This document shows, piece by piece, positions 1 through 46,116 of a stretch of DNA of 64,000 bases. Both the position numbers and the translations under genes were made by a program. The DNA lies in the NCBI GenBank assembly GCA_013115145.1, contig JAAPAO010000127.1, forward strand, positions 3,552-67,551, written 5' to 3'. Position 1 is the first letter of the stretch; the number at the start of each line of letters is the position of its first letter. The notes under the pieces are model-generated. The model was given only the letters and a program-made list of their open reading frames with translations. It was not told where the DNA came from and ran no database searches. The DNA is from Perkinsus chesapeaki ATCC PRA-425. Lineage: Eukaryota; Protista; Perkinsozoa.

Positions 1-557
1 TTTCTTCTATCAACTGACCAATCGTTACCAAGCCACAGTCGAATCGTGACCTCTTATACACAGGGTCAGGTAAAGTTAGAGGGTCCAAGAGCTAAAGGCC
101 TCTTTCATGGCGCAGTAATTGTGCGCATGCGTGCACATCTGTTCTTCATCATTTTTTAATCGCTCCGGCCAACAATTCGGCTCTATCTCTATAGTAACTT
201 ACGTCCCCCGTTCACTCCGTTTAACTTAACAATCCCAGCAGTACTCTAGGATCCTCCAAACACCAACCCAACCTGCTCCTGGGCGAGCGCTACTTCCATT
301 TCTCTTTTTCCCATTGGTATTCTTTTATGGCAGCTTAGACCCTCGTTGCTCCGTCTAACCTCGATTTTCTTACATACTACAATGCCACTTAGATCTATCA
401 ATGCTTTAACTCGTTCAATGTACGATTATTGGACTTTCCACTCGGTTTTGTAGAATCGATTTGATGACGCAATGTACCGAACCTTTAGTCGTTTGCTGAT
501 AAGGTTTCCGTGTCACTTGTAGCCTGTGCCAGTCGTAGTTGATGTCATTGTGTATAA

Positions 558-2030
558 ATGGTAGACGATGCCAGCTTGTCGCCGCCGCCTTTAGAGCACC
601 GTAGCTCCACATCAAGTACAGTATCTTCGGTATCCTCTCTTGAAGATAAGCAACAGCTTGGCACCACAGCCCTAGTGCCGCTTCATGGAGTTACCATGAC
701 CAAGCTGCTTAGTAACAAAGGAGAGGCTTTCTATTACAAGCAAAGAACGAGTCGCATTCGTCAGAGACGAGAAAGTCAGCTTCTGTATAATCTCTCGGAG
801 CCCGTAGAAGAGCTCGATGAGTTCATATCTCATTCCTGGAATGCAGACCCTCAAGTTGCTGTATGGACCATGAAGCTACGAGTTAATTTCTGGTTAGCTG
901 TTATTATTAGTATCATTACAACTATAACTATGTCTTGGCTGTTTCGCATTGAATCTCGAATCACTACGATTGTCGGTATTCTGTTGTATGTCATTTTGTT
1001 GGCGCGAGGACAGGACATACCTCTCAAGCTTCCGTGCGTTCGCCGCACATGTGATAAAATGGTATTCTTCGATCGTTGTTGTATTGATCAAGTTGATCCT
1101 ATACGTAAGGTTGCTGGTATTAAAAGTATTGGAGCCTATCTTAATAAATGTGATAGTTTCCTAGTCTTATGGAGTGATGATTATTTTCAAAGGCTTTGGT
1201 GTGTATTTGAATTGGCATGTTTCCTAAAAGGTTCGGAGACTATGTCAAAACAAAGACCATTAAAGCTCTTTATGATGCCGATACAGAAGTCAGTTTTCCG
1301 TTGTATGTTTCTGACTACCGCGTATTGGCTTCTTCTGTCGGTCTCTCCGAGAAGTCTTCGTCTCCCTCTTGATGTCATTATGTCGGTGGCCCTGTTACGG
1401 TTCGTGATCCTCGGTGACCTGGGAGAAAGAATGAAAATGAGATATGCGTTGTCGGAGATCGATTTTGAAACCGTCCAGTGCACCGAGTCATCTGATAAAG
1501 AAATGATTATTGATCTTATCGAGGAGTGGTATGGCAGTCTTGAAAAATTCAAGTCCTACGTCTCGGACAAGATGTGTCACGCCGCCAAGGAGGCAGTTTC
1601 AACGGACAGGTTGATGATTCATATTTGCTGTGTATCGCAGCCTGCAATACTTTATGGCCTTGCCCATAAGGATATGCTACAGCCGGCACTGTATGCTTGC
1701 AGGGGCATGTTATCTCTGGTTGCTGTGATATATATCTCAAAGAGATTCGGTATGGCAAGCAACGAGAAGCAGGCAGTTAAGCCTAACGTATGCCGCATTA
1801 TCGTATATATAGTGTCCGTCTTGGTATCTATAATTGTGGATGTGTTGGAGAGTCGATGGATTGTTATTCGAAGTCAGCAATATTTTCAGATTATCTCGTG
1901 TGTCATCGGTGCAGTGTCCCTTCTTGTTGTTCCTGCCATCACTTTCTCATCAACTGCATCGGCGGTCTTCGGAGATCGTTTAGATGATCGGAAATGTTGG
2001 CGATGGTTGGTTGATGAATGTTCTTTGTAG
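558..2030 (+). CDS. TIR-like domain multi-pass membrane protein (paralog 1), intronless
   Basis: 490-aa ORF with FISHSW...FFDRCCIDQ...FLVLWSDDYFQRLWCVFELACF, resembling TIR betaA/betaB/betaC-alphaC motifs with the WCxxE glutamate; hydrophobic segments inside and after the domain. Confidence 0.7.
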   Translation: MVDDASLSPPPLEHRSSTSSTVSSVSSLEDKQQLGTTALVPLHGVTMTKLLSNKGEAFYYKQRTSRIRQRRESQLLYNLSEPVEELDEFISHSWNADPQVAVWTMKLRVNFWLAVIISIITTITMSWLFRIESRITTIVGILLYVILLARGQDIPLKLPCVRRTCDKMVFFDRCCIDQVDPIRKVAGIKSIGAYLNKCDSFLVLWSDDYFQRLWCVFELACFLKGSETMSKQRPLKLFMMPIQKSVFRCMFLTTAYWLLLSVSPRSLRLPLDVIMSVALLRFVILGDLGERMKMRYALSEIDFETVQCTESSDKEMIIDLIEEWYGSLEKFKSYVSDKMCHAAKEAVSTDRLMIHICCVSQPAILYGLAHKDMLQPALYACRGMLSLVAVIYISKRFGMASNEKQAVKPNVCRIIVYIVSVLVSIIVDVLESRWIVIRSQQYFQIISCVIGAVSLLVVPAITFSSTASAVFGDRLDDRKCWRWLVDECSL

Positions 2031-2038
2031 TTTACCGG

Positions 2039-2342
2039 GTATCTTGAGCTTCACCTTGCAAGATACAAAATAGGTTGATTGCTCGACTATCGTAGTTCAT
2101 AGTTTATGCCTTTCTGTTAGCCGTTCGAATTGTTGCGACGAACTGTTAGTTTCTCGCGTAGTACCTCAATTCTTGCGTTTAACTGAAAAGTATCTTAAGG
2201 TTGAACCGGCAAGATACGAAGTAGGTTAGTTGACGCACCTCCCTGTAGTCAAATGCGAACTGTAAGTTTCCCAAGTCTCCAGCACTTGAGTTATAATGAG
2301 GCGTATCTTGAGGTTAACCGGGTAAGATACAGAATAGGTTAG
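2039..2342 (+). repeat. Three dispersed copies of a 40-bp hairpin element (2039-2078, 2190-2229, 2303-2342)
   Basis: gtatcttgagcttcaccttgcaagatacaaaataggttga / gtatcttaaggttgaaccggcaagatacgaagtaggttag / gtatcttgaggttaaccgggtaagatacagaataggttag; GTATCTT..AAGATAC inverted arms. Confidence 0.9.
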
Positions 2343-2427
2343 CTTGTTGCCTTCAGTAATATTTTCTTTCTTGTGGTTCACGACTAATTCATCATCATTA
2401 TTATTAAACAGCAGACATTGCAGTTGC

Positions 2428-3984
2428 ATGGACCACGACGAGAATAACAGTAAATGTGGATGTCGTCTGCCCCGAGCCTCCTCGACTGCTAGTACTTCCT
2501 ATACCGCCTCGGGGTCCCGAGAGGATCTAGAATCGATACAGTCAACAACGCCGCCCAGTCCGACTGTTGACTTGCAGATTTCGGCGCATCAATTGGTGCC
2601 TCTACGAGCGGTTCGGACCTCTGTGCTTTTGAACATTCGAAAGACGGCATTCGAAAGGGCCGATGGGGACAGGAACGGTGAGTTGTATACCTTATCGGAG
2701 CCGGTCGAGCGAATAGATGAATTCATATCACACTCCTGGAATGCCGATAAAGCTGCGATGATGTGGACTTTGACGCTTCGAGTCAATTTCTGTCCAGCGG
2801 TGACCTTGAGTATCTTCACAACTTTGCTGCTGGCTTGGTTCACTTATATTGATGCCCGTGTCGTCACTTTGATTGGCATCTTGATCTTCATCATTACGAT
2901 GTTTTGGGGCCATAGAGTCGTCTCCGGGAGGCTGTGGCCTGGGTGGCTGAAGGACGCAAGTGCGGCGGATAAAATGGTATTCTTCGATCGTTGTTGTATT
3001 GATCAAGTTGATCCTATACGTAAGGTTGCTGGTATCAAAAGTATTGGAGCCTATCTTAATAAATGTGATAGTTTCCTAGTCTTATGGAGTGATGATTATT
3101 TTCAAAGGCTTTGGTGTGTATTTGAATTGGCATGTTTCCTAAAAGGTTCGGAGACTATGTCAAAACAAAGACCATTAAAGCTCTTTATGATGCCGATACA
3201 GAAACTCGTTTTCATGTGGACGGTAACCGCTGCGGTCTATTGGTCTGTCTGGGCCTTTACCCCACCTCAGTGGGCATCTTTGGTTGATGCGTGCATGTGG
3301 ATGCTTCAAATGAAACTGGTAGTTCTCGACGATCTTGGCTCTCGATTCACGATGGGCTGCTGCTTGACAAGCGTTGACTTTGACTCTGTTGAGTGTACGG
3401 AGGCAAGCGATAGGAAGACCATTATTGAGTTGATTAAAGAGTGGTATGGCTCCTTGGAAGCATTCCAGAATTACGCCCAGATGATGCTAACTGAGGTCGC
3501 CAAGAGCACCGTGGTGGCTCGGGAGAGGCTAACTGTTGACATCAGTTGCATGTCTATGCCTAGTATTATATATGGTTTGGCATTCAATGACATGACAACT
3601 CCTGTTACGTATACGTCTCGGGCGCTAATAGCGGTATTTCTAGTAGGCAGGTTGCTCAAATTCTTCATTCTCTCTCCACAGCATCCGGCGGCGTCAACAA
3701 CTCCGAAGAAGCTTTCCGCGCGTCGACGGACCTGCCGGATACTCTGCTACCTCTCGACGGCTCTGTTGTCAGTTTGCTTGGATGCTGGTAGAAGGTATTA
3801 CGAGCAGCGACGGCAGGCGGTGAGCTGGGCAGGCTCGCTAAGGCTTATTTCGGGTTGCATATTCGTTTTGGTGGCCCCGTTGGTTACCTATGGGCCCTCT
3901 TTATCATTGTTGTTTGAAGCGAAGGGATGCACTTGTGAAGCTCTCAAGCTGATGCTGACGGAGAGCACAGGCCTGCCTGAATAG
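2428..3984 (+). CDS. TIR-like domain multi-pass membrane protein (paralog 2), intronless
   Basis: Same motif set as 558-2030; first ATG at 2428 (the track start at 2344 is TTG). Confidence 0.7.
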   Translation: MDHDENNSKCGCRLPRASSTASTSYTASGSREDLESIQSTTPPSPTVDLQISAHQLVPLRAVRTSVLLNIRKTAFERADGDRNGELYTLSEPVERIDEFISHSWNADKAAMMWTLTLRVNFCPAVTLSIFTTLLLAWFTYIDARVVTLIGILIFIITMFWGHRVVSGRLWPGWLKDASAADKMVFFDRCCIDQVDPIRKVAGIKSIGAYLNKCDSFLVLWSDDYFQRLWCVFELACFLKGSETMSKQRPLKLFMMPIQKLVFMWTVTAAVYWSVWAFTPPQWASLVDACMWMLQMKLVVLDDLGSRFTMGCCLTSVDFDSVECTEASDRKTIIELIKEWYGSLEAFQNYAQMMLTEVAKSTVVARERLTVDISCMSMPSIIYGLAFNDMTTPVTYTSRALIAVFLVGRLLKFFILSPQHPAASTTPKKLSARRRTCRILCYLSTALLSVCLDAGRRYYEQRRQAVSWAGSLRLISGCIFVLVAPLVTYGPSLSLLFEAKGCTCEALKLMLTESTGLPE

Positions 3985-4034
3985 CATCATAATAGCTTAA
4001 CTGGCATTACGGCCGACCGTTCCTTTCCATTCCT

Positions 4035-4068
4035 GCGGTCTTGGGTTCAATTCCTGCTACTATCATTT
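4035..4068 (+). other. tRNA 3'-end-like fragment (intergenic)
   Basis: cggtc-ttggg-TTCAATT-cctgc-tactatc-a-ttt; same spacing as the other 13 fragments. Confidence 0.5.
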
Positions 4069-4142
4069 CCACGTATCGCATCTTCATTGCGTTGCCGTTG
4101 AGTTTTCAGGATTCTTCCGAGCTTACTTTGTTAACCTTCGTA

Positions 4143-6086
4143 ATGGCGAGTCACTCCTACCAGCAACCTTCCGTGTCTCGGCCACCGCCTCCTCCACCTG
4201 GGATGCTAGGATCGCCTCAACAGGTAGTAGTCATTCCCGGGAGTATCAGCTCGTCGAATGCTGATTGTTATTATCTATTCCGTATCGCCTGGACCATTTT
4301 CCTTTGAGCTGTTCGTTTTCCGTGCCCGGAGAGCGCTTGGAGACGAATCATCTATTTCAGAACGCGGCAGTTGCAGGATACGGCAATCTCAATCGACATG
4401 ACAACTCCGGTGACTCCGCCGTCCAACAGTACTAGATTGGGATGGTTGTTTGCCGTTTGATCGTTAAGTGCAGGTTGTTGATGAATGCATCACAGTTTTC
4501 TGCTGCTGCTGCCGCGGGAGTTGCCAAACCATCCACAAATGGACGTGTAGTATTACGGGTGGACGGGAAAGAATTTATTTTGCAAATGTATCAATCTACA
4601 TTCATCGGTAGCTCATGCCACAGGCGGCACTATCTCCTCAATCTCGGCGCTTCGGTTATTAAACTTTCCACCATGGCGGGATGACACATCGAATCCCAGC
4701 AGTCTCCAGCATTACGCAGTACCTGCTCTTCTAAATGAGCGGCCTACACGACTACGGTGGAATTCCAGCATCTACCTGGGAAATATGTCGAATGAATACA
4801 ATAAGATTTGCCGCTAGTCCAACCGGCACTACCCCCATTAAAGTCAGGGAGACCGTCCGCAGAGACGGTGGGATATCACTCAATAGTAGAGGAATGGATC
4901 AGCAGCTCATCAATTTCTATTTAAAATACTTTTGGGCGGCAAACTCGTTCGCCCTCCTCGGGAAGATAAATAGTCGAGCACATGTTGATATTCCGGCACT
5001 AGCTTCAACTCCCTAGTGCGCGTCAGTCACCTTGGCCCGTGTCAAGCCAGCGCGGAATTAAGCTCAATTCGGGCGGCGGTTAGTGTGTATTAGTATGTTT
5101 GAATTTGTAGAATATTTTACTTATGCGGATCCGTGAAGTGATATGAGATATCTTCCAATAATGATATGTGCTGCTGCGCACATCTACTTGCCGATGATCG
5201 AGATGCGTTTAATTCAGGCCCCAGTCCCGCCGCATAATTTGGCACCCCCTCACAAGACGGAAGAGCTTGGCCGGTAGGCGATTAGAGGAAAGAGCGGTAT
5301 GAACATGCGTGCAGTTACGGTCTCGAAGGCATGTTGGAGACAGTATCACCATCCGATACGGCAAATCAGTTCCGAAGACAGCTCCAGCTTGGGCTCGATG
5401 CCGGCTCCCTGCTCGGTGTTCCCGAGGCGCCTTTCGACACCCCCGGGACGGGTCACTTGTCGAAGGATCAGCTAAGGAGATATCGCGTGCCGAATTGCTA
5501 TTTTGTCGGTGGTGGGGATCAGAATGACCAAAGCATGTCTGGAGTGAGTTCCAAGTTGCAACGGTTTCGAGATAGATCCGTTCTCCTTCAGTTCCGGTTT
5601 GCGGTGAAGGCCAGTCATCCCAAGCAGTACCAGACCGAGACGCTCTTTTATATTTTCTATGTATTGGCCGGCGATGAAATGCAAGCGGTTGCCGCAATGG
5701 AGCTGCACGCTCGTGGCTGGAGGTTCCAGAAGAAGCTGCAGCTTTGGTTCCGAGTGGCAACTCAAGATGATATTGATGCAGCCATTGCCAATGGGGAGGG
5801 GCCCTCTCGGAAGGCCAAGGCCAAGGATTCGTCACACTATGTATACTTCGACCCGAGCGGCTGGAAAAATAGAATTTGGGGAGGCTCGTCGGCGGCATTG
5901 GAAAGTTCAGAGTTCCTCACTGCGGTTGATCATCAACATCAACTCATGGCGGCACCGGTTACTTTTCCTCTGCAAACGCATTTCGATCTCTACATGCCAG
6001 AGCCGACGGCAGCCAAGCAACAGCAAAGGCTTTTACAAAGGCAACAACAACAGCAGCAGCAGAGTAACAACCGAGTTAACGCCTAA
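4143..6086 (+). CDS. CNOT2: CCR4-NOT subunit NOT2/CNOT2 homolog, multi-exon
   Basis: Removing intron 5274-5314 gives ELGRYGLEGMLETV..LQLGLDAGSLLG (CNOT2-like); NOT2/3/5 box LFYIFYVLAGDEMQAVAAMELHARGWRFQKKLQLWF and YVYFDPSGW; 5' exons from ATG 4143 only roughly resolved. Confidence 0.8.
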
Positions 6087-6182
6087 AAGGCTACTATCAT
6101 TAGCTGTATTCGCTACTATGTCATGTCTTGTGTTTGAAAAGTTAAACACAGGAATATTCAATAACGGAAAGTAGCAACAAGT

Positions 6183-6335
6183 AATGAGATGGTTGCTTGA
6201 TGATGATCAAAAGGCGATATCTCAAGCTAGGCTGTCTCGGTGGTGGGTGATTCATACTAACGGCGAGGTTATCGATGTCTTAACAGACAAGTCTATTGTT
6301 ATCAACATCGTCTGGTCTGATAAGCTGTTGTTTAA
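6183..6335 (-). pseudogene. Decayed partial duplicate of the last exon of the USP7-like gene
   Basis: Translates QLIRPDDVDNNRLVC*DIDNLAVSMNHPPPRQPSLRYRLLIIIK versus QLIKPEDVISKELVGYDADDFAVSLDHPHP...SRYRPLTIK* at ~6894-7050; contains an in-frame TAA. Confidence 0.7.
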
Positions 6336-6893
6336 GAACGGATTCAAGGAATACCACTTGGATGGCTGGTGCCAAATGAGGTATAAATGCCTCGAGTAAT
6401 TTGCTAGCCCCAGAGGACACTATGGGAGTCCCATAATGGGACGATGGTGGATAGTCGTACAGTTCCGCCGGCTTAATAACAACAGACAGTTGACTAGGTT
6501 CGGGTTAAGTCCGACAGTCGTAGACCGTGATATACTATCGGTCCTCGACAGTAGTGCTGGGCGCGAATATCTTACCGCGATAATCATCTCGTTTCCATCC
6601 AAATGAGCTTCACGCGAATGAAAGAGATGAGCTATGTCGCATAAGGAAGTGACTCCCTACCCCAATCGGGATGTCATTCGATATTCTATGTAGCTGTAAT
6701 GACAAAGACCGCATACCGTTTTCCAGATGCGAGAGTTGTCTACAAAGATTGCTTCCTGGACTCTTCAATAAAGTCAAGGTTGAGTCATATCGTGCTTAAT
6801 GATCATCAGCTGCGTTTCGTTATTATGTTTTCGATTCACTAGTTCAACACAATCATGATCAGTTACAGAAAATAGCAATAACGAATGAGATGG

Positions 6894-9800
6894 TCACTTG
6901 ATGGTTAAAGGGCGATATCTCGACCCACTTCTTGAGCCGGGCAGTCTTGCTGGTGGATGTGGATGTGGATGATCCAAACTAACAGCAAAGTCATCGGCAT
7001 CATAACCGACAAGCTCTTTGCTGATAACATCCTCAGGTTTGATAAGCTGTTGTCTGTTGCTATTAAGTCTTTTTGATTGAGCTACCATCCACCATCGGCT
7101 CATTATGTGTTCTGGCACAAGCAATTTCTGTCGGATCTTCTCCTTCAATTCGGCACCGGTCGTTTGGCCCTAAAACAGCAATTCATATCTCTCTCAATCC
7201 CTCTCAACGTGCTTACCACAATAACCTTCACCAGAGTCGGGAATCCGAAATACATTCCACCTTGAGTGCCCCTGTCATAGTGTTGCACGTAAACCGTCAG
7301 AGGTTGCCCATCCTCGACCGGAGCGTGAGGCGTCACAATCTTAGCACGACAATCATCGTCGTCTCGTTCCAGCCGGATGTAACTATCAAATTATCGTCAC
7401 GCGCCACGAAATTATATCTTTATTTTACTCGAATAAAACATTTGTAAGCTTGTTCTGGGCAGTACTGTAACGTTGGAGCTCCTGGAAGATGTTGTCTTCT
7501 CCACCGTATACTTCCATAACCTTTACAGTAAAAATACCGAGGCCAGGAATCGAACCCGGGTGACTTACCTTCGATCTGTCGGTAACAACCATTCGGACAG
7601 GCACTGCCTTTGCATCACACTCGTCCTCGTGGATCACTCCGACCTTACGACAGTCGCTCACAAACGTCGGGTTCTCATCCACGAGGTGCTGCCACAGCTG
7701 ATTTACCGTCAAAGAAGGCTTTAAATCTGAATAATAAATGCGGGGTGCCGGGAACGAACCTATGCCTCACCACCCAGGTCATTTCCTGCTTGCTCGCTGT
7801 AACACTCTGTTGTCGGTACAACAGTCATTAAACCGTTGGCTACCTCTCTCACATGCTCATCGAAGAAACGAACCTGAGAAAATAACCGTAAATGAATGAG
7901 AAGTGTGGTATGACAACTTGAATATGAAATTTAAATGCGTTCTTGACATCACCATTGTGGTGATGATTAATGCGAAACCATTAATCATATAAAAATGGTT
8001 AATTGCACTCTATGTGGTGTGGAGTGTTTCCTTCCCACATACAGGATGCATAAATATTATATCACTATGGATTCGCGAATGATGGATCTCGCCGTCGGGG
8101 AGCTGTCGGCAATTAAGGTAGGACCCGTGAGAATATCTCCTAGAGATGACATTAAACACACTTACACATGCACATCCATTTTCATTCTCAACAAGCCTTT
8201 TCGGGACCCCGACTGCTTGCATCGTCCATTCGTGCGTTGGTGGCTGTCCCCAATGCAAAGATGAGAACTTCTCGTGTGACGCCGTCACATGGGCCGCCGA
8301 ATTGGCATCATCCAGTGCCGCCTGATGAGACCAGTCCACCCAGGTTCGATCCCCAGCGAGAGCACTTACGAAGAACCTTTGGTGGCTTCCAAGCAACGAA
8401 TGACCGGCTTCCGCACCGTTATTTAGGAATTCTTCTCGGGAAGCAGCTGGCGGTGTCCCTCCCGGAGTTAGTAAAATATCTTGCCTGAAGAGTATACAAC
8501 TACACCCTTCCCGCAACCATGGCCCGCTCTTTCGAACAGCTCCAGTTTCACAGGGTTGATTATAGGCGATCGAGTTTTGATCTTTCCGTAACCACAGCTG
8601 TCGGAAATTTCGGGAAAGTGTGTCGATTTTTTCGTATTAGGACCCAAATAAATTAAAACTAGTAATTAAATTGATATAAACTTGATATTGACTGATGAAA
8701 TTGATAACTTCATTAATATTTCTAATGATTTAGTGGAATTCAACATCTCAAGCACGCGATATTGTAAGAGTAGCAGTACTGGTTCGATGAGAATAGCTAT
8801 AATTATTAAAATGTCCTCGCCAGGGATCGAACCCGTGCCCCTACCCTTCATCAACATTGAACGTCTCTCGAATCGCTCTGGTCACTTGCGCCAAATTCCA
8901 TCTGAAATCCATCTCCAGAGTTTCAACCGGATGCGGTCGTCCATGTGACACAATCGGTGTCTCCCTAAAAACCGAAAATTTCCGGCGACATTTCTCGCTT
9001 TTTCTTACTGTATCGAAGCCGTTGACGGATGAGCGTTATTGCTATCATCGGTGCCACGGGAGAACGGCCGGTCCCAACTGTCATGCGAGCATCTGGCGAA
9101 ACAATGGAAATTTCTCGCCGAGCCAGCAGCCTTACATCCCATCAATGCTTGCTTCCTCCGCAGGGTCCACCATGTGAACAGTAACAACAACTTGATTAAT
9201 AAGACTAGCGAAGCAGTCTGCAGCTGTAAGTATCTTTTCAGAGCAGATAATGCACGGTTAACCTAAAGATTCCTCACCTTAAGTTTCGGGACCTCCGCAG
9301 AGCTCAAATCGGGCACGGCTGGGACAGGTGGATTCGGTCCGTCATACCATTGGCAAATCAAAACCGGTGCCACACCATTGCAAACGGTGACCTGACAACA
9401 TACCAAATCGATCAGCTGGGCGAGCGCTTTTTACAATCCAACTCTACCAGGTTAGTGAGCTCCTGAGGATCATCGAGTTTGACAGATGCAAGACCGGTGC
9501 GTCGCTCCGCCTCCTCGTAACACAAAATTGATCCACCGTCCTTTTCCGAGGGCACGCCTTCTGGCCAGAGCGAAAGAAACTGAATGCATATCCAAGGTTG
9601 AAGCAGGTAAGATACAAAATAACTCTACTTTGGCTAGAATTTCCTGATCAATCTCCTTCATATTCTGTAAGCCAGCAGCTTCCACCATCTCGCTGATCCT
9701 CGTTCCCAAGGCTGTCCGTAATGTCGGTGGCCCTCCAGCAGCCGTAACTCCTCCCAGGGAGATGTAATCGGCACCGAGCTCGACAACAGCGTGAGTTTTA

Positions 9801-12800
9801 GGGCAATAATATTTCATAATGACCAAAGTGCCTAATACCAAAAACGCAATACAAAAATCGCTTCGCTCCGCTAACCTACCCTGATTTCTCTCGATAATAT
9901 CTCCGAGTGGCTCAGGTTTGGCTTTTCCCAAATGCAGACGTCTGTGCACCGCCAACGTGTGGCTCGGTACCGCTAGTAACTAAAAATGACCGCTGCGCCA
10001 CGAAATTCATCCACCCGGTTCGTACTGTAATGTCTGCAACCTCCGGAGATCGATCCCTTCCTCGCTCGCTTGTTCGAGTTCCGATGGAAGTTTTCATTCT
10101 GAAAATTCAACCATTATGGGCCGGAAAAAATAGGAAAATTCCCGGAAAATTCCGGTCGTTTTTCCCCTCCCTGATTTATATAATATTTTCACATTGCAAA
10201 ATCGTTTTTCATATCATCAGGGGAGACAATGCCGTCCAATCTCGGACGAAAATCAAAACAATGGCCTCGAATTTAGTTTCTAAAATTATACCCCGCCAAA
10301 ATCTCAAAAAAATTCCCGTTATTTTTCCACGAAAAAGTCGTAAATTCGTTTTTTCCGGTGGTAATCTTACGCATCATTAAGCATCGAATCAAGTGTCCTT
10401 CCAGCACGAGATCGACTTCCGCGATGTAAATGATGATGTCCGTCGCTGCCCTGTCGGGTAGGTCCGTACATATTCCAATCTGCAGCGCCTGTGCTGTCCT
10501 CCTCAGCGCTCTCAGATACAACCATATCGCTCTTCAATTGGGACCAATCCATCTCAGTCATTCTGAAAGACGCAAGTTCGATTCCCGGCAGCGGAATTTT
10601 TAGGACTGTCCGTTACTTCTGACAATTTCGCGATAACTTGTCCAACAAAGATGCCAAGGTTAAACTAGAAAATTTCTCTCCAGAAACACAGCAAACACTT
10701 CCCTCCAAATTTTCCATCGACCAAATCCGCAATTTCAAGCAAATTTCCGAGCAGTTTTTCCCTGAAAATTTCCGAAATTTTGTCATCAAATACCCAAGCT
10801 CACCCATCAAGCCGTCTCCGTCTAAGATACGCCAAACCAATCTGTGTTGGGTCCAATTCGCTCGCCTTCTCATTAGTAGCCTTCAATGCATCAACAACCG
10901 ACTCGAAAATTTGCGGTAACTACCAAAACAAAATCAACCTCACCCGAAAAGATTCCCCCGCCTACCTCAGCAGTTCTGAGCATCCGTATAGTCGTTCCAG
11001 CGTTATCCGCTATTGCAGGAATACCAAAGCCCTGCAGTCAAGAGTGCAAACGTTTTAATGTGGGTAATTAATTCCGATTCTGAGATTTATTTCCCCAAGG
11101 TTACCTCTCCTCCCCTTAAATCCGCCGATGTCACTATCCTAACATTAACGTGCATGGCCGCTTCTTGAAGCTCTCGCTTCCGATCGTCAACTCTCTTAGA
11201 CTCGAGCTCTAAGCGATTCTTAACCTGACAAAATCGATCACGTGGTTATCAATTCAACCTATTTCGTATCTTACCGTTTCATAAGACGGATTCGTTAATA
11301 TCTTATCTGCCTCAGAAGCTTTCACATACACCAATAAATACCTAAAAATGCCCTCCCCCGGGTTCGAACCCACGACCTTCCCCTTACGCGCTATATATTC
11401 TTTGCCTCGTCACTTCCGTCGGAGATCTCAAACCTTTTGTAAGATAATCAGATGGAACCACATCGGTGCCGCCGAAATTATCCTCAACCTGAAACGAAAA
11501 ATGTAAAACGAAAAACGCTTCGCTCCGCGTGAACACTCACCGCCGCATACTCCGAAACCTTCGTAACAGAATCGTCATCAAACCGGAACCAATCAGTTCC
11601 TGAAATCGATCGATTGGGCGCGCGCTTGTAACATCACCGATAAACTCACCTTCTCCTTTTGGTCGAATAAAAGCATAATAGTGTCCCGAATTAACATCCC
11701 CGGAATGGACCTATTATGGTTATCCCCTGGTTATCCGAGGTTGAAGCGCGAATTCCAGGCTCAAAAAGATACGCCCGCGTAGAATCTTCACAGTGCGCAG
11801 CTTCCTCCACCTCCTTACCAGAACCGTGTGAAGAATATAGTCTCCTGTCCCGGGAAGCAAATTATCCAAATTCAAACGCGTTGGGAATTCAAACCGATCA
11901 TGCCTGAGCAAAATCGATCACGTGATCGATTACGAACCCCCTTACAATTTAACCATGTCCATCCTGGCGAAATCAAAATTGAATCTTTTCAGTTGAATAT
12001 TTAGAACCGGTGGGAACTTCGTAAACCGAATACCTTTCCTTGCCCTTTGCTTTCCATGACCTAGTAATCGAAAGGTCACGGGCTCAATTCCCAGTCGGGG
12101 CATTTTTATTACCTTCTGCTTCATAGGCATTCTCCCCCTCCAACATCTCCACTTGCGTAAAATCAAGTAGAGAATCTTGTAGAGTCTTCAGTCCAGCCAC
12201 ATTCAGCGATAAATCATAGAAAGGCTCAAGTCTGATAGGAGTAGAAAAAAAATCGAGTGAACCCGAAACCACAAAAGCTCGAGTGAGAATGAAGATGTCC
12301 AAGATTTTCCTGTCATTGTCGTGCATTCCCCAGCAAATATATTTGAAATTTCCCGAATTTTTCGGAAAAAATGTCCAATTTTCCCGAAAATTTCCGGTAA
12401 TTTTCCCTAGAACATCTCAGATTTCCTTAGTTTACTACCTTCTACTAGAGTAGCTTATATCCACACATTCAATAAAGTTCTCAAGCTCTCCTTCGAAGAG
12501 TTGCTGTATCGCACCGTCGACCGAAGTACCCTTCAACTTCTCCTCCAACTTGTCACAGAGGAGTCTCTCCAACTCTTGAGCCTAGAAACAGCAGAATCTT
12601 TAAATATAAAGAATCCCATAATCATCAGGTATAATAAAAGTCTATTATATCATATCATGAATAGTTACAGTGTATCTGTCAAACTACCAGTAAAACATCC
12701 CAGGTTCCATTCCCACGCAGAACACATCAAAATTATCATGTTCTCCTCCATCAACTGGCCGATCTATTTTAATGTTTATTTGGTTGCCCTAAGACGTGCT

Positions 12801-15800
12801 GTTCTACAACCTTCCTCACCAAGAACCCCACGAAAGACCTCCTTCACGTAGTAATACGTACCATACAGCAAGACTATTATTAATTTCATACCGCTCCTCT
12901 CTTACGTCATGTTGAGTAAATGCATCCATCGAATCCCATCCAAATGCTCTTATCAAATCCTTACAAGTCACCGGGACATCAGAAGTCTGCAAGTCCAAAA
13001 AGACCTGACCACAACAACTCTCAAGAGATGGATGATATAACGACCATCGATAATTTTCAACTGAGACACTGCATTGGATGCCTGGATCCCTCTACCGCCT
13101 GGTGCTCTCTCTGTGCGCTCGATCTTGGACTCTATATCAACACACTGTCCCCGATAGCGTCCAGCCTTGCGAACCAGAATCCAATCCGAAACTCGCTTAA
13201 TCCTCAAGTACAATCGAAACGACAATGAGGGAATTGCGCACCTACCGAACGCATGCTTCAACCTAAGATACTACCTTTTGCAGTGCAATCGGCAAGCTCA
13301 ATCGACCTCCAGATGGACTCATACATGCCAATGAATCTTCCTCTCCAATTTCCCCACCTTCCTCATCCTTAGCCAGACCTGAGACACCCCTCAAAAATCT
13401 TCACAGTGCGAAAGATTCCTACGTTCTCGCTCCGCTCTAGGATCAACCGAATAAACAATCTCCCGGAATCTTCCCAAATGATACAACGACTGTAGCAGTC
13501 CATTCAGGTAGCAAGTTGCCCCATGGTTTCGAAGACCAACGAAACTGACGACAGAAAAATCAAAAAAATTTTTTCCCTGCAAAGCTACCCTGTTCCTCCT
13601 CGCTCCCTATCAGTCCCGTTGCCCAGAACTGTCTCGGCTTGCCTAGCGTAAGCTGATGCTCTCAAAACCTAACAAAACAGCAAGTAAAATAGGATATGTT
13701 TTCCAAACTCGGTCGCCTTTTCACGATTATTTCTACAGATTTACTTTTCCTCCGGTTTAACATGTCTCATTCAATCACAAGTTCAATTATCTTTACTCTC
13801 GACAACCGTGTAGTGTTGGAGGCCTCTCCTGGCTCCCGTCTCGGGAGATCTTTATTATTTACCCCGAAAAACAACTTCCAAAAATTCCCACCAATTTTTA
13901 CCGAATAATATAACTTTCCCAATCTTACTTGGAAACACATATCTCCCCACTTTACGAAATTTCCCAAAAAATCGATAATTTTTCCCATGTTTTCCCCCCT
14001 ATTACCAAATTCCCTTCCTCATCCAACCAGCCTTCTTTAGGATCCAATACTTTATCGATTAACACCAGATCATGCCAACCACGATCAATCTCAGCCTTGC
14101 AGAAATTATGACTGTCAGATTTAACCTGATCATAAATCATTGAAATATTACAAAAACCTATCTCTTCAGTCACCAAGATGACCCATGCCTTGCTGCTCGC
14201 CCAGTGAAATATCTCACTTCAAAAACTAGACATTAGAGCCCCCCAGATTTCCTCCCTATTCTCACGAAGCCCAGCCTCAGGCGGCTTTGCTATGAACAAC
14301 CGCTGAGTGAATTCCAAAGTTGACCAAAGTCCACCAATACCAAACCGCTTCACCCATTTCGAGTCGTGACGGAATATACTACAAATTCACATTAATTTTT
14401 ATATTGCTTCATATGATTTATCGAATACCATATCCAACTGCATCACAAGCCCATCAGAGATTTCTTGCGCGCCACGAAACTCTACTTCCACTTACAACAG
14501 ATTTTCTGTAATCCTTCTGGTTGATAACAATAATCTGAAACTTAACACCAGCATAGACAAACCGAGGATCCATGCCTGACATCGAAAATTCACTGCGCCA
14601 CGAAATTAAAAAACCACTACTACCTTCCTCCCTCTCCTGGCATTCTACATAGGCAGCTAAATAGGTCGGCGCACGTGTGCGATTGCCGTGGGGGAAGACC
14701 AAAAGCTGAGGAGAAGTTGGTATGAGAATTCTCGTTAAAGCCACAGAGATTTGGATCCGAATACATCCGAAGCGGTGAGTCACATTCCCCTATTGAAGAG
14801 ATGTCCGACTTTTTAATGAGATTTCAAGTTGTATTTCTCCGGTATATGGTATTCTCCATTTACCATACGCATTGCAATATACTACATTTAATACGAAATG
14901 AACTATAAAAAACATATAGGATAAAATGTGCGGCACTTTCATCTACGAGCCTTCATAATTCCAAATAAGGTTCCACCTTGGAAGGGGTCCAGTTTCCTTA
15001 TAATTTTCCATTCCCGATGACTTGAACCATAACTTCATCAGAAGATCTAATGGGACAATTATACCATATAAAAGCACCCTCAAATTTCACAAAACGTGTA
15101 TTCATGAATCGCTTCGCTCCGCCTGAATATTGTTACCTTAAAAGTAAATGGTCCAGCTGTGAGGGAGGGTGAACGAATCTGCTCCATTGGTTGATATTTC
15201 GCAATATCCGCTATCTTAAACTCCAGCTCATTAGGGGCACATGGTGGAATTGTAGCTGATTAAACAAAAGAGCGGTATGAGCTGCACCAACACACACACC
15301 CGACCAAGCTAAAGCATATACTAAAGCACCGCTCTGTAGACGTGCCGAGCTTTCCAGCAATAAAAGGACGAATACGATATTCAAAAACCTTCGCTTAAAA
15401 ACGAGTCAATGCTGCTCCTCGGTGAATTAATTGAATATAGCATTTGGGCATATTTCCATTTGGCTCGATTTACGTGGCCCCGAGAATTATGATATATTAA
15501 TTATGACAACGAAGTAGTAGTAGAACAGAATAGGCACCAATTTTATCGACACAGCTACCAAAAATGCCATAATTATTAACTGCGAGAATTTTTAAGAAAT
15601 TTCCAGAAAGAAAGTTTTTATTCAATAAACCTCGGTGGTATTATCAAATAGTAGGACACTACTGTTTATCATTATCACTATATTATACCACTGTTATTTA
15701 TATTATTACTATAGAAGACAATATTGAATATCTCCCTTATATTATTACCAGCATTATGATCCACTTCTCCTCTTTGTTGTAGATCCTTCCGACTGCTACT

Positions 15801-40135: not shown

Positions 40136-42560
40136 TCATATTTCCTAGTAAATTCAAAGAACAACAATGTACAGGCTCTCTCAAGTAGATATCCAAATTC
40201 TTTCGAGTGCGCATCGCCGCCGCCCTCCACCTACCCCAGCGGTATCCAGTAAGAACTGCGATACCATAGGCCAGTCCGAACAACCAACAGAAGCCCACTG
40301 CGACACATGCCTGGTTGAAACTGTGCCACGGTAACGTCTGAGTTTTCAAAGATGCTTTGTATGTCTCAGGTGCTTCGCCTAGAAAATAAAAATGCCCCCA
40401 CCGAGGATCGAACCTGCGTCCTCCTTACCATCAATGAACTCAGGGCTCTGCAGCGACCTGGCAACCTTCTTTGCCTCTTCCTTCTGCTGCTTTTCTGCAT
40501 CCTTCATCCACTCTGAACGAAATTAGCAGTTTTCTATATATATCAAAATCCTTCCAAAAATGAGCGTTAAAACATGCGCTCAACTTCATATTTTTTCTTA
40601 CCCGAAGGTGTGCCGGATTGCATCCGAGATATCTTCCTTTCAGGCTCCCCCCTATCATCCGTAATCAATCCCTCCTCCTTGCTCTTCTCGAAAGATACGC
40701 TCTTGCTCACTGAAAAATCTTCGCAGTGCGCAACCGTAAAGATTCTCATCCCTTACATTCTGATTTCTTCTTATCATCCTGCTCGGCTTCCTCTACACTC
40801 GACTTCGCGTCCCACAAAAATGTCTGCAACGACTTAACTTGTTCCTCGAATCCTTGAAGTACCACCGCAACCGCCTAAAATAGCACCACCGAGATCAACT
40901 TCATAAGTTTCCAACTTGATTTCTAAACAAATTCCCTTTTCAACTTTTTATCATACTACATGTCACCACTTACACACATCTCAACATTCAACCACAATTC
41001 ACACACCAAAAAGGGAGCTGAGAAAAGTTAAGTATGATTTGCCTAGAGTAGTATACATCTCAATCGATTGTGAGGCAGATCTGGTCCCAAACCCCAAACG
41101 AACTTGAAACCTCTGTTATATTTTCAGCGAGTGTCCACAGAATATAAACTTTTTTATCATCCAATTTGGTCAAACTTCCTTCAATACTTTCTCTCTACCA
41201 AAAAATAGATCGATAATTTACAAAAATTTCGCAAAAAAATATTTCCTAAGATTTCACGCAGAAGTTCGGAGATGATGCGAAACGGCGCATTCTTACATCG
41301 GGACCATCTTCAACTCTAATCTGGTCAGCTGATAAATCCTTAGGGACACTATAGCTAATCTCACTAGTGTGGACATTAAGGAAATATGGACGCTTCTTGT
41401 TAGTGGCATCATCTGTGAACTCTAATCTTACCCAGTGACCTGACCGGAAGAAATAATACCACATTTCCGCAAACTTTGCAGGCGACTCCATTATCAAAAG
41501 ATGCGATGATGCGGATTTATGGTACACATGATCTCAATATTACTTGAATCAATATCATAATTATACAGTAATGGAATTAATAATACCACATTTCCGCCAA
41601 TTCAATATGTCGCTTCACTTGAAAATAATGCTATATATTATTAATATGTCATTACATATGGGGCATGATTGTAGCGGACGAGAGTACATCTTATAGCAAT
41701 AAGATAACTAACGTTTCATAAAGATAATCAAATAAGAATCCTATTTTATTAAATAATACCGCATTTCCGCCAATTCGTAATTACCTGGAGACTCGTCCCC
41801 ACCATCATTATCATGTCTATTCGGAGCACGAACGACATCGCTGGCCTAAGCAGGAAAATAATAAAGACAAAAGACGACTGCGTTACGACTACCCCATTCA
41901 CAAGCCTCTTGCGTTCGCCGACAAGCCTAGCGAGCTCCTTTCGATCGGCATTGAAAGCCTTGCGCAACCTAAGATACACGAACTCTGCGCCTCGACCTGT
42001 TGCCTATCTTGCACGGTCAACCTCAAGATTCTCTTACTGCTTGAGACGTTTCTCCTGCTCAGGAGTGAACGAGGACTTCGTCGACATTTCCCATTCGCCC
42101 AACAGCCTCTGCAATGAATCCTCAGTGTTCCTGAAAACGAAAATCTTCACAGCGCGCATCCTCGATATAAAAATATCCACAGCGCGCATCTTGAATTTAG
42201 AAATCCTCGCATTGTGCGTCTTCTTATACAGAAATCTTCACAGTGCGTAAAGATACTTCCCCTTCATTACCTGCAAGCCTTCTCCAATCTCTCACACGCA
42301 TCAACAGCATCAGAAGCATGTTCCGCAGCGCTTTTCTAACACCAGAACTCTCCACGTCAAAAGCGCGCGCCCATCTAATCGATTTCACCTGCGTGCTGAA
42401 ATGCGACGTGTCAATGCCGCTTCGTTTGAGTTCTTCTTTGGTCTTCCTAAACGTATGGGCCTGTCTGATGACCGGAGCCGCTGGCACTGCTTTAGCGACT
42501 GGGGTTTCTTCCTTGATATCCTTGCCTAAATCTTCGCCGTCAGCCTCTGAAAAAAATGGG
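40136..42560 (-). CDS. Hypothetical coiled-coil protein with C-terminal TM, multi-exon (may continue the 42863-46116 gene)
   Basis: TQ|KSAAEHASDAVDACERLEKACR|NTEDSLQRLLGEW..YLRLRKAFNADRKELARLVGERKRL..CVAVGFCWLFGLAYGIAVL; both ends uncertain. Confidence 0.55.
40379..40428 (-). other. 50-nt intron containing a tRNA 3' fragment (sense)
   Basis: GTAAG-gaggac-gcagg-TTCGATC-ctcgg-tgggggc-a-ttttt..CTAG. Confidence 0.8.
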
Positions 42561-45800: not shown

Positions 45801-46116
45801 AGAAGAATCCTCCGGTAAATGCCAACATAAGCGTATTGACAATCAAGTAGTTATCCATTTTGGAGATGGTAAGATCGAAAAGGTCTCGAATATCCTCACG
45901 GTATAGTCTAACTTGGTCAAACCGGCATTTCTGTGTATGGTACACCTACAGGCCAGAAGAGAATCTTAGGGTTGAGCGTGCAAGATACATAATAGGTTAC
46001 CAACCTGCCCTTACCCTTTTCTGATTAATCTTCCTATTGAACATAAAGTTCTGCCTATTGTACTCAAAGATGCCCTTAACACCTTCAAACATCGAACCGA
46101 CTTCCAAGCCTCCCAT
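42863..46116 (-). CDS. Hypothetical multi-pass membrane protein, multi-exon
   Basis: FEYNRQNFMF..|..QVRLYREDIRDLFDLTISKMDNYLIVNTLML..LRLPVP..HFYLFYQLQQHWQGFDAYTRVCM|VIGTNQLLDAITY..; several TM segments; resembles an alveolate family I recall but cannot name. Confidence 0.6.

Follow-up and report, generated by a model that had tools for sequence, protein, structure and literature searches.

Within a 64,000-nucleotide stretch of the genome of the clam parasite Perkinsus chesapeaki ATCC PRA-425 (contig JAAPAO010000127.1, positions 3,552 to 67,551; hereafter the window), an inverted-repeat element of about 40 nt is found both between genes and inside very short introns. A first-pass annotation had read this element as a micro-element resembling miniature inverted-repeat transposable elements (MITEs) and behaving as an introner, i.e. 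as a mobile sequence that creates or remodels introns. The question is whether the element is an intron-generating transposon or a sequence that is retained for another reason. Our results confirm the repeat, with corrections, and do not support the active-introner reading; what fits them best, as we tentatively propose, is that the family is old and dispersed and that selection maintains it as the target of a putative sequence-specific factor.

Copies of the element align without gaps over 43 nt and comprise a left arm, GTATCTTG (element positions 1-8), a 12-nt loop, AGGTTGAGCGTG, an inverted right arm, CAAGATAC (positions 21-28), and a tail, AAAATAGGTYRA; the fixed parts are both arm sequences, the loop core AGGT-TGA and a second AGGT in the tail. 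The borders are sharp, with information content rising at position 1 and background reached upstream of position -3 and beyond about position 43, and outside the 43 nt there is no similarity between copies, their flanks being unrelated. The P. chesapeaki assembly comprises 3544 contigs with a total of 41.7 Mb; in it, the right half (17 nt, at most one mismatch) gave 302 matches compared with one for the reversed control, and the hairpin (26 nt, at most two mismatches) gave 151 compared with one. A model search of the genome returned at least 150 full copies, all 150 listed having expectation (E) values below 0.01, and the repeat seen in the window is thus part of a dispersed family. Its members are clustered: among the 150 best matches, 32 pairs lie less than 10 kb apart, compared with about 5.4 under a uniform spread.

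We ran a sequence-only model, built from 73 copies, unfiltered over the whole window and obtained five full copies (E 1e-12 to 4e-11) and three partial ones (E 1e-4 to 5e-4); mismatch-tolerant pattern searches gave five matches each, compared with 0.00-0.05 expected from window shuffles. Three of the full copies form an intergenic array on the plus strand at 2039-2081 (model positions 1-42, 40.0 bits, E 2.5e-11), 2190-2232 (39.4 bits) and 2303-2345 (44.4 bits), so the three intergenic copies reported at 2039, 2190 and 2303 are full-length members of the family (E about 1e-11 to 1e-12, 40-44 bits). The set of copies listed at that time was incomplete: two full copies, at 41989-42031 (minus strand, 40.6 bits, model match 41992-42031) and 45961-46003 (plus strand, 43.0 bits, model match 45961-45999), and a left half at 9251-9272 (minus strand, left arm and loop only, model positions 1-22, E 1e-4) had been missed, and all three lie in minus-strand introns. 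The first of these is in sense, 6 nt after the donor GTAAGA of intron 41968-42036; the second is antisense within intron 45946-46014; and the left half directly follows the donor GTGAG of intron 9234-9277 or 9218-9277, its right arm being displaced by an insertion of about 14 nt.

The claim that the motif fills the 49-nt minus-strand intron 9580-9628 in antisense held in part. Both the intron and a plus-strand copy at 9588-9629 are real, but only part of the copy is recognised by the model: the match covers model positions 10-42 (9596-9629, E 5e-4), and the left arm is degenerate and reads ATATCCA. The minus-strand 50-nt intron 11225-11274 does begin with the right half of the element, as had been proposed: GTAAGATACGAAATAGGTTGA at 11252-11274 (minus strand, model positions 20-42, E 2e-4) supplies its donor, GTAAGATAC, and the intron was called independently. 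A weaker copy placed at 11733-11775 (plus strand, in the minus-strand intron 11711-11818) did not survive, as it is readable only with an insertion of about 13 nt between the arms and went undetected by the 73-copy model at an E limit of 10. A doubtful left half at 13240-13274 (minus strand), GTATCTT-AGGTTGAAGCATGC, directly after a donor GTA and with the right arm missing, was also not detected by this model. As for the host genes, the open reading frame (ORF) around 9.5 kb had no Pfam match, so that the USP label given to the host of intron 9580-9628 was not confirmed, and ORF 9473-9955 had one weak unrelated match only among 1.84 billion representatives; the sole UCH match, at 11945-12166, was under the Pfam cut-off (17.2 compared with 23.9 bits).

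We then consider mobility. Taken literally, the earlier interpretation was of an introner or MITE that is mobile at present and makes or remodels introns now, and it would be in keeping with the multi-copy nature of the family, with local clustering (three variants with the loop AGGTTGAAGC occur within 4 kb of window sequence) and with a 34-mer on another contig that is 97% identical to the 9588 copy. However, target-site duplications, which had been suggested as a check, showed no excess, the best direct repeat across the borders averaging 2.83 nt for 78 copies compared with 2.90 +/- 0.10 nt for 200 shuffled pairings, and no flanking sequence is shared between copies. The inverted repeat is internal rather than terminal, since conserved sequence runs on to about position 43 on one side only, and inverted pairs on the same contig are inconsistent in orientation. 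No autonomous partner was seen, no search aimed at longer arm-bounded elements having been made. Neither window positions 1-14000 nor the exons flanking two of the introns have another allele or a paralogue in the assembly, whether carrying the element or lacking it, and the 26-nt hairpin pattern was not found in metagenome, viral or prokaryote collections. One copy has moreover stayed in the same place in three Perkinsus lineages (see below). Present-day mobility is therefore very improbable.

The relationship of the element to introns was determined by parsing the window and 60 further loci with splice-aware dynamic programming, which combined a three-periodic Markov coding score, trained donor and acceptor matrices and an intron-length prior; 74 hairpin copies were classified. 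Two simpler procedures were discarded: an initial intron caller based on 60-nt open flanks gave calls too readily (controls scored equally), and strand calling by ORF coding potential was too weak and was replaced by the splice-aware parse. According to these computational calls, 37 of the 74 copies lie inside introns on different contigs, 24 in sense and 13 in antisense; three others overlap an intron edge, eight are in a read-through open frame and 26 are without a coding chain. No homologue was found for one of the read-through ORFs (locus L039, 443 amino acids). Apart from one of 199 nt, the host introns measure 44-77 nt, and the element makes up most of such tiny introns. In 23 of the 24 sense copies the donor is 0-15 nt upstream of position 1 (72 nt in the remaining one), and the element's own GT is the donor in only two. 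The acceptor is an AG of the element, at position 35 or 40, in six sense copies and otherwise falls 6-25 nt further downstream, in one case 87 nt. Three of the 13 antisense copies have their donor in the reverse-complemented tail (GTRACC or GTGAGC). The hairpin lies close to the donor when the copy is in sense and close to the acceptor when it is antisense. The splice sites stand at variable offsets, mostly outside the element, which brings no splice sites of its own; intron 11225-11274, with GTAAGATAC as donor, is the exception.

These data bear on the possibility that the element is a signal in the transcript, i.e. that the hairpin binds a splicing or RNA-processing factor, or helps to define very short introns and, upstream of genes, the region in which the acceptor for spliced-leader trans-splicing lies. 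Such a role would account for the half of the copies that occupy introns consisting mostly of element, and for the close spacing of sense copies behind their donors. The loop also contains an invariant A in a TYRAS context, which resembles a branch site; the arms being palindromic, an antisense transcript would form the same stem; and upstream arrays (described below) have the sense orientation of the downstream gene, whose outron might contain them. A sister family of hairpins provides a further point in its favour, in that the arms are common to both families and the loops are not. This sister hairpin, TATCTTT-CGCACTGTG-AAGATT (TATCTTT-N-CGCACTGYG-AAGATT), has nearly the same arms around a shorter, different loop (arm spacing of about 9-10 nt compared with 12 nt in the element); it has 81 copies (at most two mismatches) compared with 0 in controls, some of them in tandem arrays with a period of 30-35 nt.

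Several observations argue against a transcript signal. The geometry of the element relative to the splice sites is not fixed, and the AG at positions 34-35 is seldom the acceptor in the parse (2 of 24). Variants of the left arm are common (T2 is replaced by A in 16 copies and T6 by C in 14, out of 79), and no compensatory change in the right arm was found among the 79 copies, i.e. the stem shows no covariation. Folding of the RNA hairpin was no better than that of shuffled sequence (z -1.0 to +1.2), and an Rfam search of window positions 1900-2500 yielded nothing reaching a gathering score. The lack of compensation, the ordinary fold and the absence of an Rfam match indicate that it is the sequence that matters, not pairing as such. 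The loop and tail, which are not palindromic, are kept equally well in antisense copies, and one copy is translated within an exon and is conserved. On balance we consider a transcript-level role unlikely.

Conservation could be measured without bias at element positions 1-2 and 29-43, since these were unused in finding the copies. G1 is kept in 84% of copies and the tail AGGT (positions 34-37) in 81-95%, while position 33 has the consensus base in only 56%, so that neighbouring tail positions differ sharply (56% compared with 92%). The tail is conserved to a similar extent in all contexts, with 9.4 of 12 positions kept in sense-intron copies, 9.8 in antisense-intron copies and 9.2 in non-coding copies. 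Reading of the element on double-stranded DNA would account most easily for this equality, which would also fit copies of the same age that are merely decaying.

Evidence that copies are old comes from the exonic copy mentioned above (locus L051:986-1028, minus strand, contig C3279), which lies in frame in a RabGAP-TBC coding exon (ORF 848-1936, minus strand). The encoded protein is 100% identical to P. chesapeaki FOL47_010349, 66% to P. olseni FOZ62_027661 and 64% to a third ORF from a public read assembly. The 27-nt palindrome translates to YPEVEHARY, a stretch of nine residues without a single difference among the three lineages, compared with the 64-66% identity of the proteins overall; the tail residues that follow differ (KIGQ, GKAQ and KAGP), with the downstream frame unchanged. 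No usable GT...AG pair was seen around this copy, which is therefore most simply regarded as exonic; it is translated in the GenBank models of both species, P. chesapeaki and P. olseni. It matches the family consensus at 27 of 28 positions, which cannot be chance, and the copy must therefore have been present in the common ancestor of the three lineages and its core retained since. That three Perkinsus lineages share a copy at this position speaks against mobility at the present time.

The intergenic copies of the window provide a second measure of constraint. The trio at 2039-2345 is located in the 400 nt that separate two paralogous ORFs arranged in tandem (558-2030 and about 2429-3984): copy 1 begins 9 nt past the stop codon of the upstream ORF (558-2030, labelled TIR-like), and copy 3 ends 84 nt before the ATG of the second paralogue, to which it is sense. 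This ATG, at about 2429, is derived from the 518-amino acid protein P0005, compared with a 546-amino acid ORF starting at 2344. The 70-nt spacers upstream of copies 2 and 3 are 57% identical, and none of 500 shuffles reached their alignment score. Copies 2 and 3 are a local tandem duplication and not independent insertions, and within the duplicated units the element is 82% identical compared with 57% for the adjoining spacer. A second array of three copies, with the same layout as the trio, is found at L063 (contig C564, 1522-1820, minus strand), where the copies are 123-133 nt apart and sense to a start codon that lies about 105 nt beyond the end of the array; this gene has a fourth copy in a downstream intron. 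The upstream arrays and the clustering of copies resemble clusters of regulatory sites.

Separately from the arrays, the two tandem paralogues (558-2030 and 2429-3984, plus strand) are 45% identical and code for a membrane protein without a Pfam match that has orthologues in P. olseni and distant relatives in Symbiodinium. An extension of the upstream protein at its C terminus into copy 1 was rejected, as relatives of the TIR-like protein all stop at the same residue.

The age of the family raises a further explanation, in which the copies are relics of an introner- or MITE-like burst that preceded the split of the Perkinsus species and are now immobile and either neutral or co-opted. Hundreds of dispersed copies with unique flanks and in both orientations would be the expected residue of such an event. 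Introns of 44-50 nt containing a 40-nt element are hard to imagine without the element and are unlikely to predate it, which makes an old intron-creating origin possible, and the minority of introns that use bases of the element as donor (2 of 24 sense and 3 of 13 antisense copies) or acceptor (6 of 24 sense copies) point the same way, as do 22 exact right halves in the genome that have GT directly before them. Introner families with inverted repeats have been described from the related Amoebophrya (PMC7789003) and from many other eukaryotes (PMC9860276). Against a burst stand the lack of target-site duplications, the internal position of the inverted repeat and the variable placing of the splice sites along the element. 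Conservation that is uneven, and higher than in spacer of the same age, differs from plain neutral decay, and tandem arrays and an in-frame exonic copy are unlike the traces of intron-generating insertion. We therefore regard relics of a burst as rather improbable; this explanation concerns origin, is partly independent of the present role of the element, and can coexist with selection for a recognition site.

The explanation that we favour is that the element is a recognition site for a sequence-specific factor, the family being old and probably under selection. The site would act wherever it is located, i.e. in tiny introns of either orientation, in short upstream arrays and, rarely, in coding sequence, and its ends would sometimes serve as splice sites. 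Recognition at the level of DNA appears somewhat more likely than at that of the transcript, which would make the element a site for a transcription or chromatin factor. The use of its ends in splicing would be incidental: replacement of the C before the arm CAAGATAC by T turns this arm into a good donor, and the tail may end in CAG, a sense acceptor, or in GTRACC, an antisense donor. The family, its anatomy, the locations of its copies, the missing transposon hallmarks and the one case of conservation between species were observed; from them we infer that the intronic copies are under selection, that a binding factor exists and at which level, DNA or transcript, it would act. A broader form of the same idea, possible but doubtful, is that the hundreds of 40-bp motifs and the sister motif are docking sites for a putative sequence-specific factor in introns, exons and upstream arrays, the family perhaps having arisen in an ancient introner burst to which some of the parasite's tiny introns would be due, with co-option later.

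A number of points weigh against a recognition site. We know of no factor that binds the element, and its binding is putative; 40 bp is long for a single binding site. The differing arm spacings of the two sister families fit a fixed DNA dimer poorly and fit a reader of hairpins better. Half of the copies being intronic can also be explained by a role in splicing, and 26 of the 74 copies received no intron or exon call. The parser was validated only against two introns that had been named beforehand (9580-9628 and 11225-11274), both of which it recovered independently. Conservation between species was followed for one copy only, in the protein sequences of the relatives; that copy is coding, so selection on the protein could add to its conservation, and the conserved block extends about nine residues upstream of the element (DGELxIRQ).

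Short resemblances to known motifs did not lead further. We dropped the spliced leader, a tRNA B-box and U2 or U6 small nuclear RNA as possible sources of the element, and likewise a GATA or AP2 site inside the arms, these resemblances being short or unsupported.

No description of the element was found in the literature searched, and the nearest comparisons are with other kinds of repeat. Introners are known from Micromonas, Aureococcus, fungi and dinoflagellates. The element shares with them the formation of whole small introns in many unrelated genes by a multi-copy family with an inverted repeat capable of forming a hairpin, in a lineage that lies next to the dinoflagellates. Unlike introners, it has no direct repeats or target-site duplications at its borders, its splice sites mostly lie outside it at distances that vary, its length is only 40 nt, it has many intergenic copies and one coding copy, and it has been kept in place across species (in the one copy traced) rather than being lineage-specific. 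By comparison, the introner elements described in Amoebophrya carry both inverted and direct repeats (PMC7789003, PMC9860276). MITEs are similarly short, non-coding and dispersed, with an inverted repeat and both orientations represented; however, the inverted repeat of the element is not terminal, being followed by a 12-nt tail, there is no target-site duplication, and the element is half the size of the smallest usual MITEs. The description of the element as a MITE-like introner thus holds for its dispersal, its filling of tiny introns and the minority of cases in which its own bases are splice sites, and fails on the missing target-site duplications, the variable offsets and the intergenic and exonic copies.

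A further parallel is with the sites of genome-organising factors, such as CTCF sites in animals and the B-box 'extra TFIIIC' sites of yeasts, the REP palindromes of bacteria being a formal analogue. Like CTCF and TFIIIC sites, the element appears as hundreds of copies of a long motif that are independent of orientation, intronic and intergenic, often clustered, and conserved at orthologous places. The resemblance is one of behaviour only; no binding protein is known for the Perkinsus motif.

To our knowledge, gene control in Perkinsus and the recognition of its very short introns are almost unknown. A long motif present in hundreds of copies provides a handle for fishing out a binding factor, and a transfection system exists for P. 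marinus. If the docking-site reading were true, the family would represent a system for organising the genome or regulating genes that has no described counterpart in alveolates. For the debate on introners, a family that looks introner-like at first sight and behaves as a conserved functional element is either a warning against calling introners by repeat content alone or a picture of an introner family long after its mobility ended.

The remaining observations concern modules related to the element and other short cassettes. The right-half module AAGATAC-N5-AGGTYRA occurs without the left arm in tandem arrays, at C1906:17321-17720 (period 36 nt), C1906:27948-28042 (26 nt) and C3260:12430-12550 (26 nt), and also at L070 (contig C1478, period 25 nt) and L001 (contig C42, period 89 nt). 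The sister hairpin is present on the minus strand of the window at 13379-13422, in 11711-11818, and at about 40710-40756 and 42223-42295.

In the window region 8500-14400 (minus strand), nearly every tiny intron holds a short cassette, and several of these recur genome-wide. They include 3' halves of tRNAs at 11342-11387, 12061-12112 and 10563-10616, the cassette GCGGAGCGAAGCG at 9832-9879 and 11489-11540, the cassette AATTTCGTGGCGC at 9980-10025, and CACGTGATCGATTTTG adjoining the acceptor at 11904-11945, 11225-11274 and 11600-11649. The tRNA 3' halves, GCGGAGCGAAGCG, AATTTCGTGGCGC and the sister hairpin are like the element in being short conserved modules that sit in tiny introns and recur across contigs; they differ from it in sequence, only the sister hairpin having nearly the same arms, with a shorter loop.

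Exons often start with GT after the acceptor (G in 47%, T in 62%) and end in AG, giving predicted junctions of the form AG|GT, a tendency that may be inflated because the training set (the window and the 60 loci) was enriched for the element. Finally, one antisense copy lies in the U1 snRNP C gene (L007:1123-1587, plus strand, contig C608; Pfam zf-U1, E 3e-18), in the intron that follows the zinc-finger exon.

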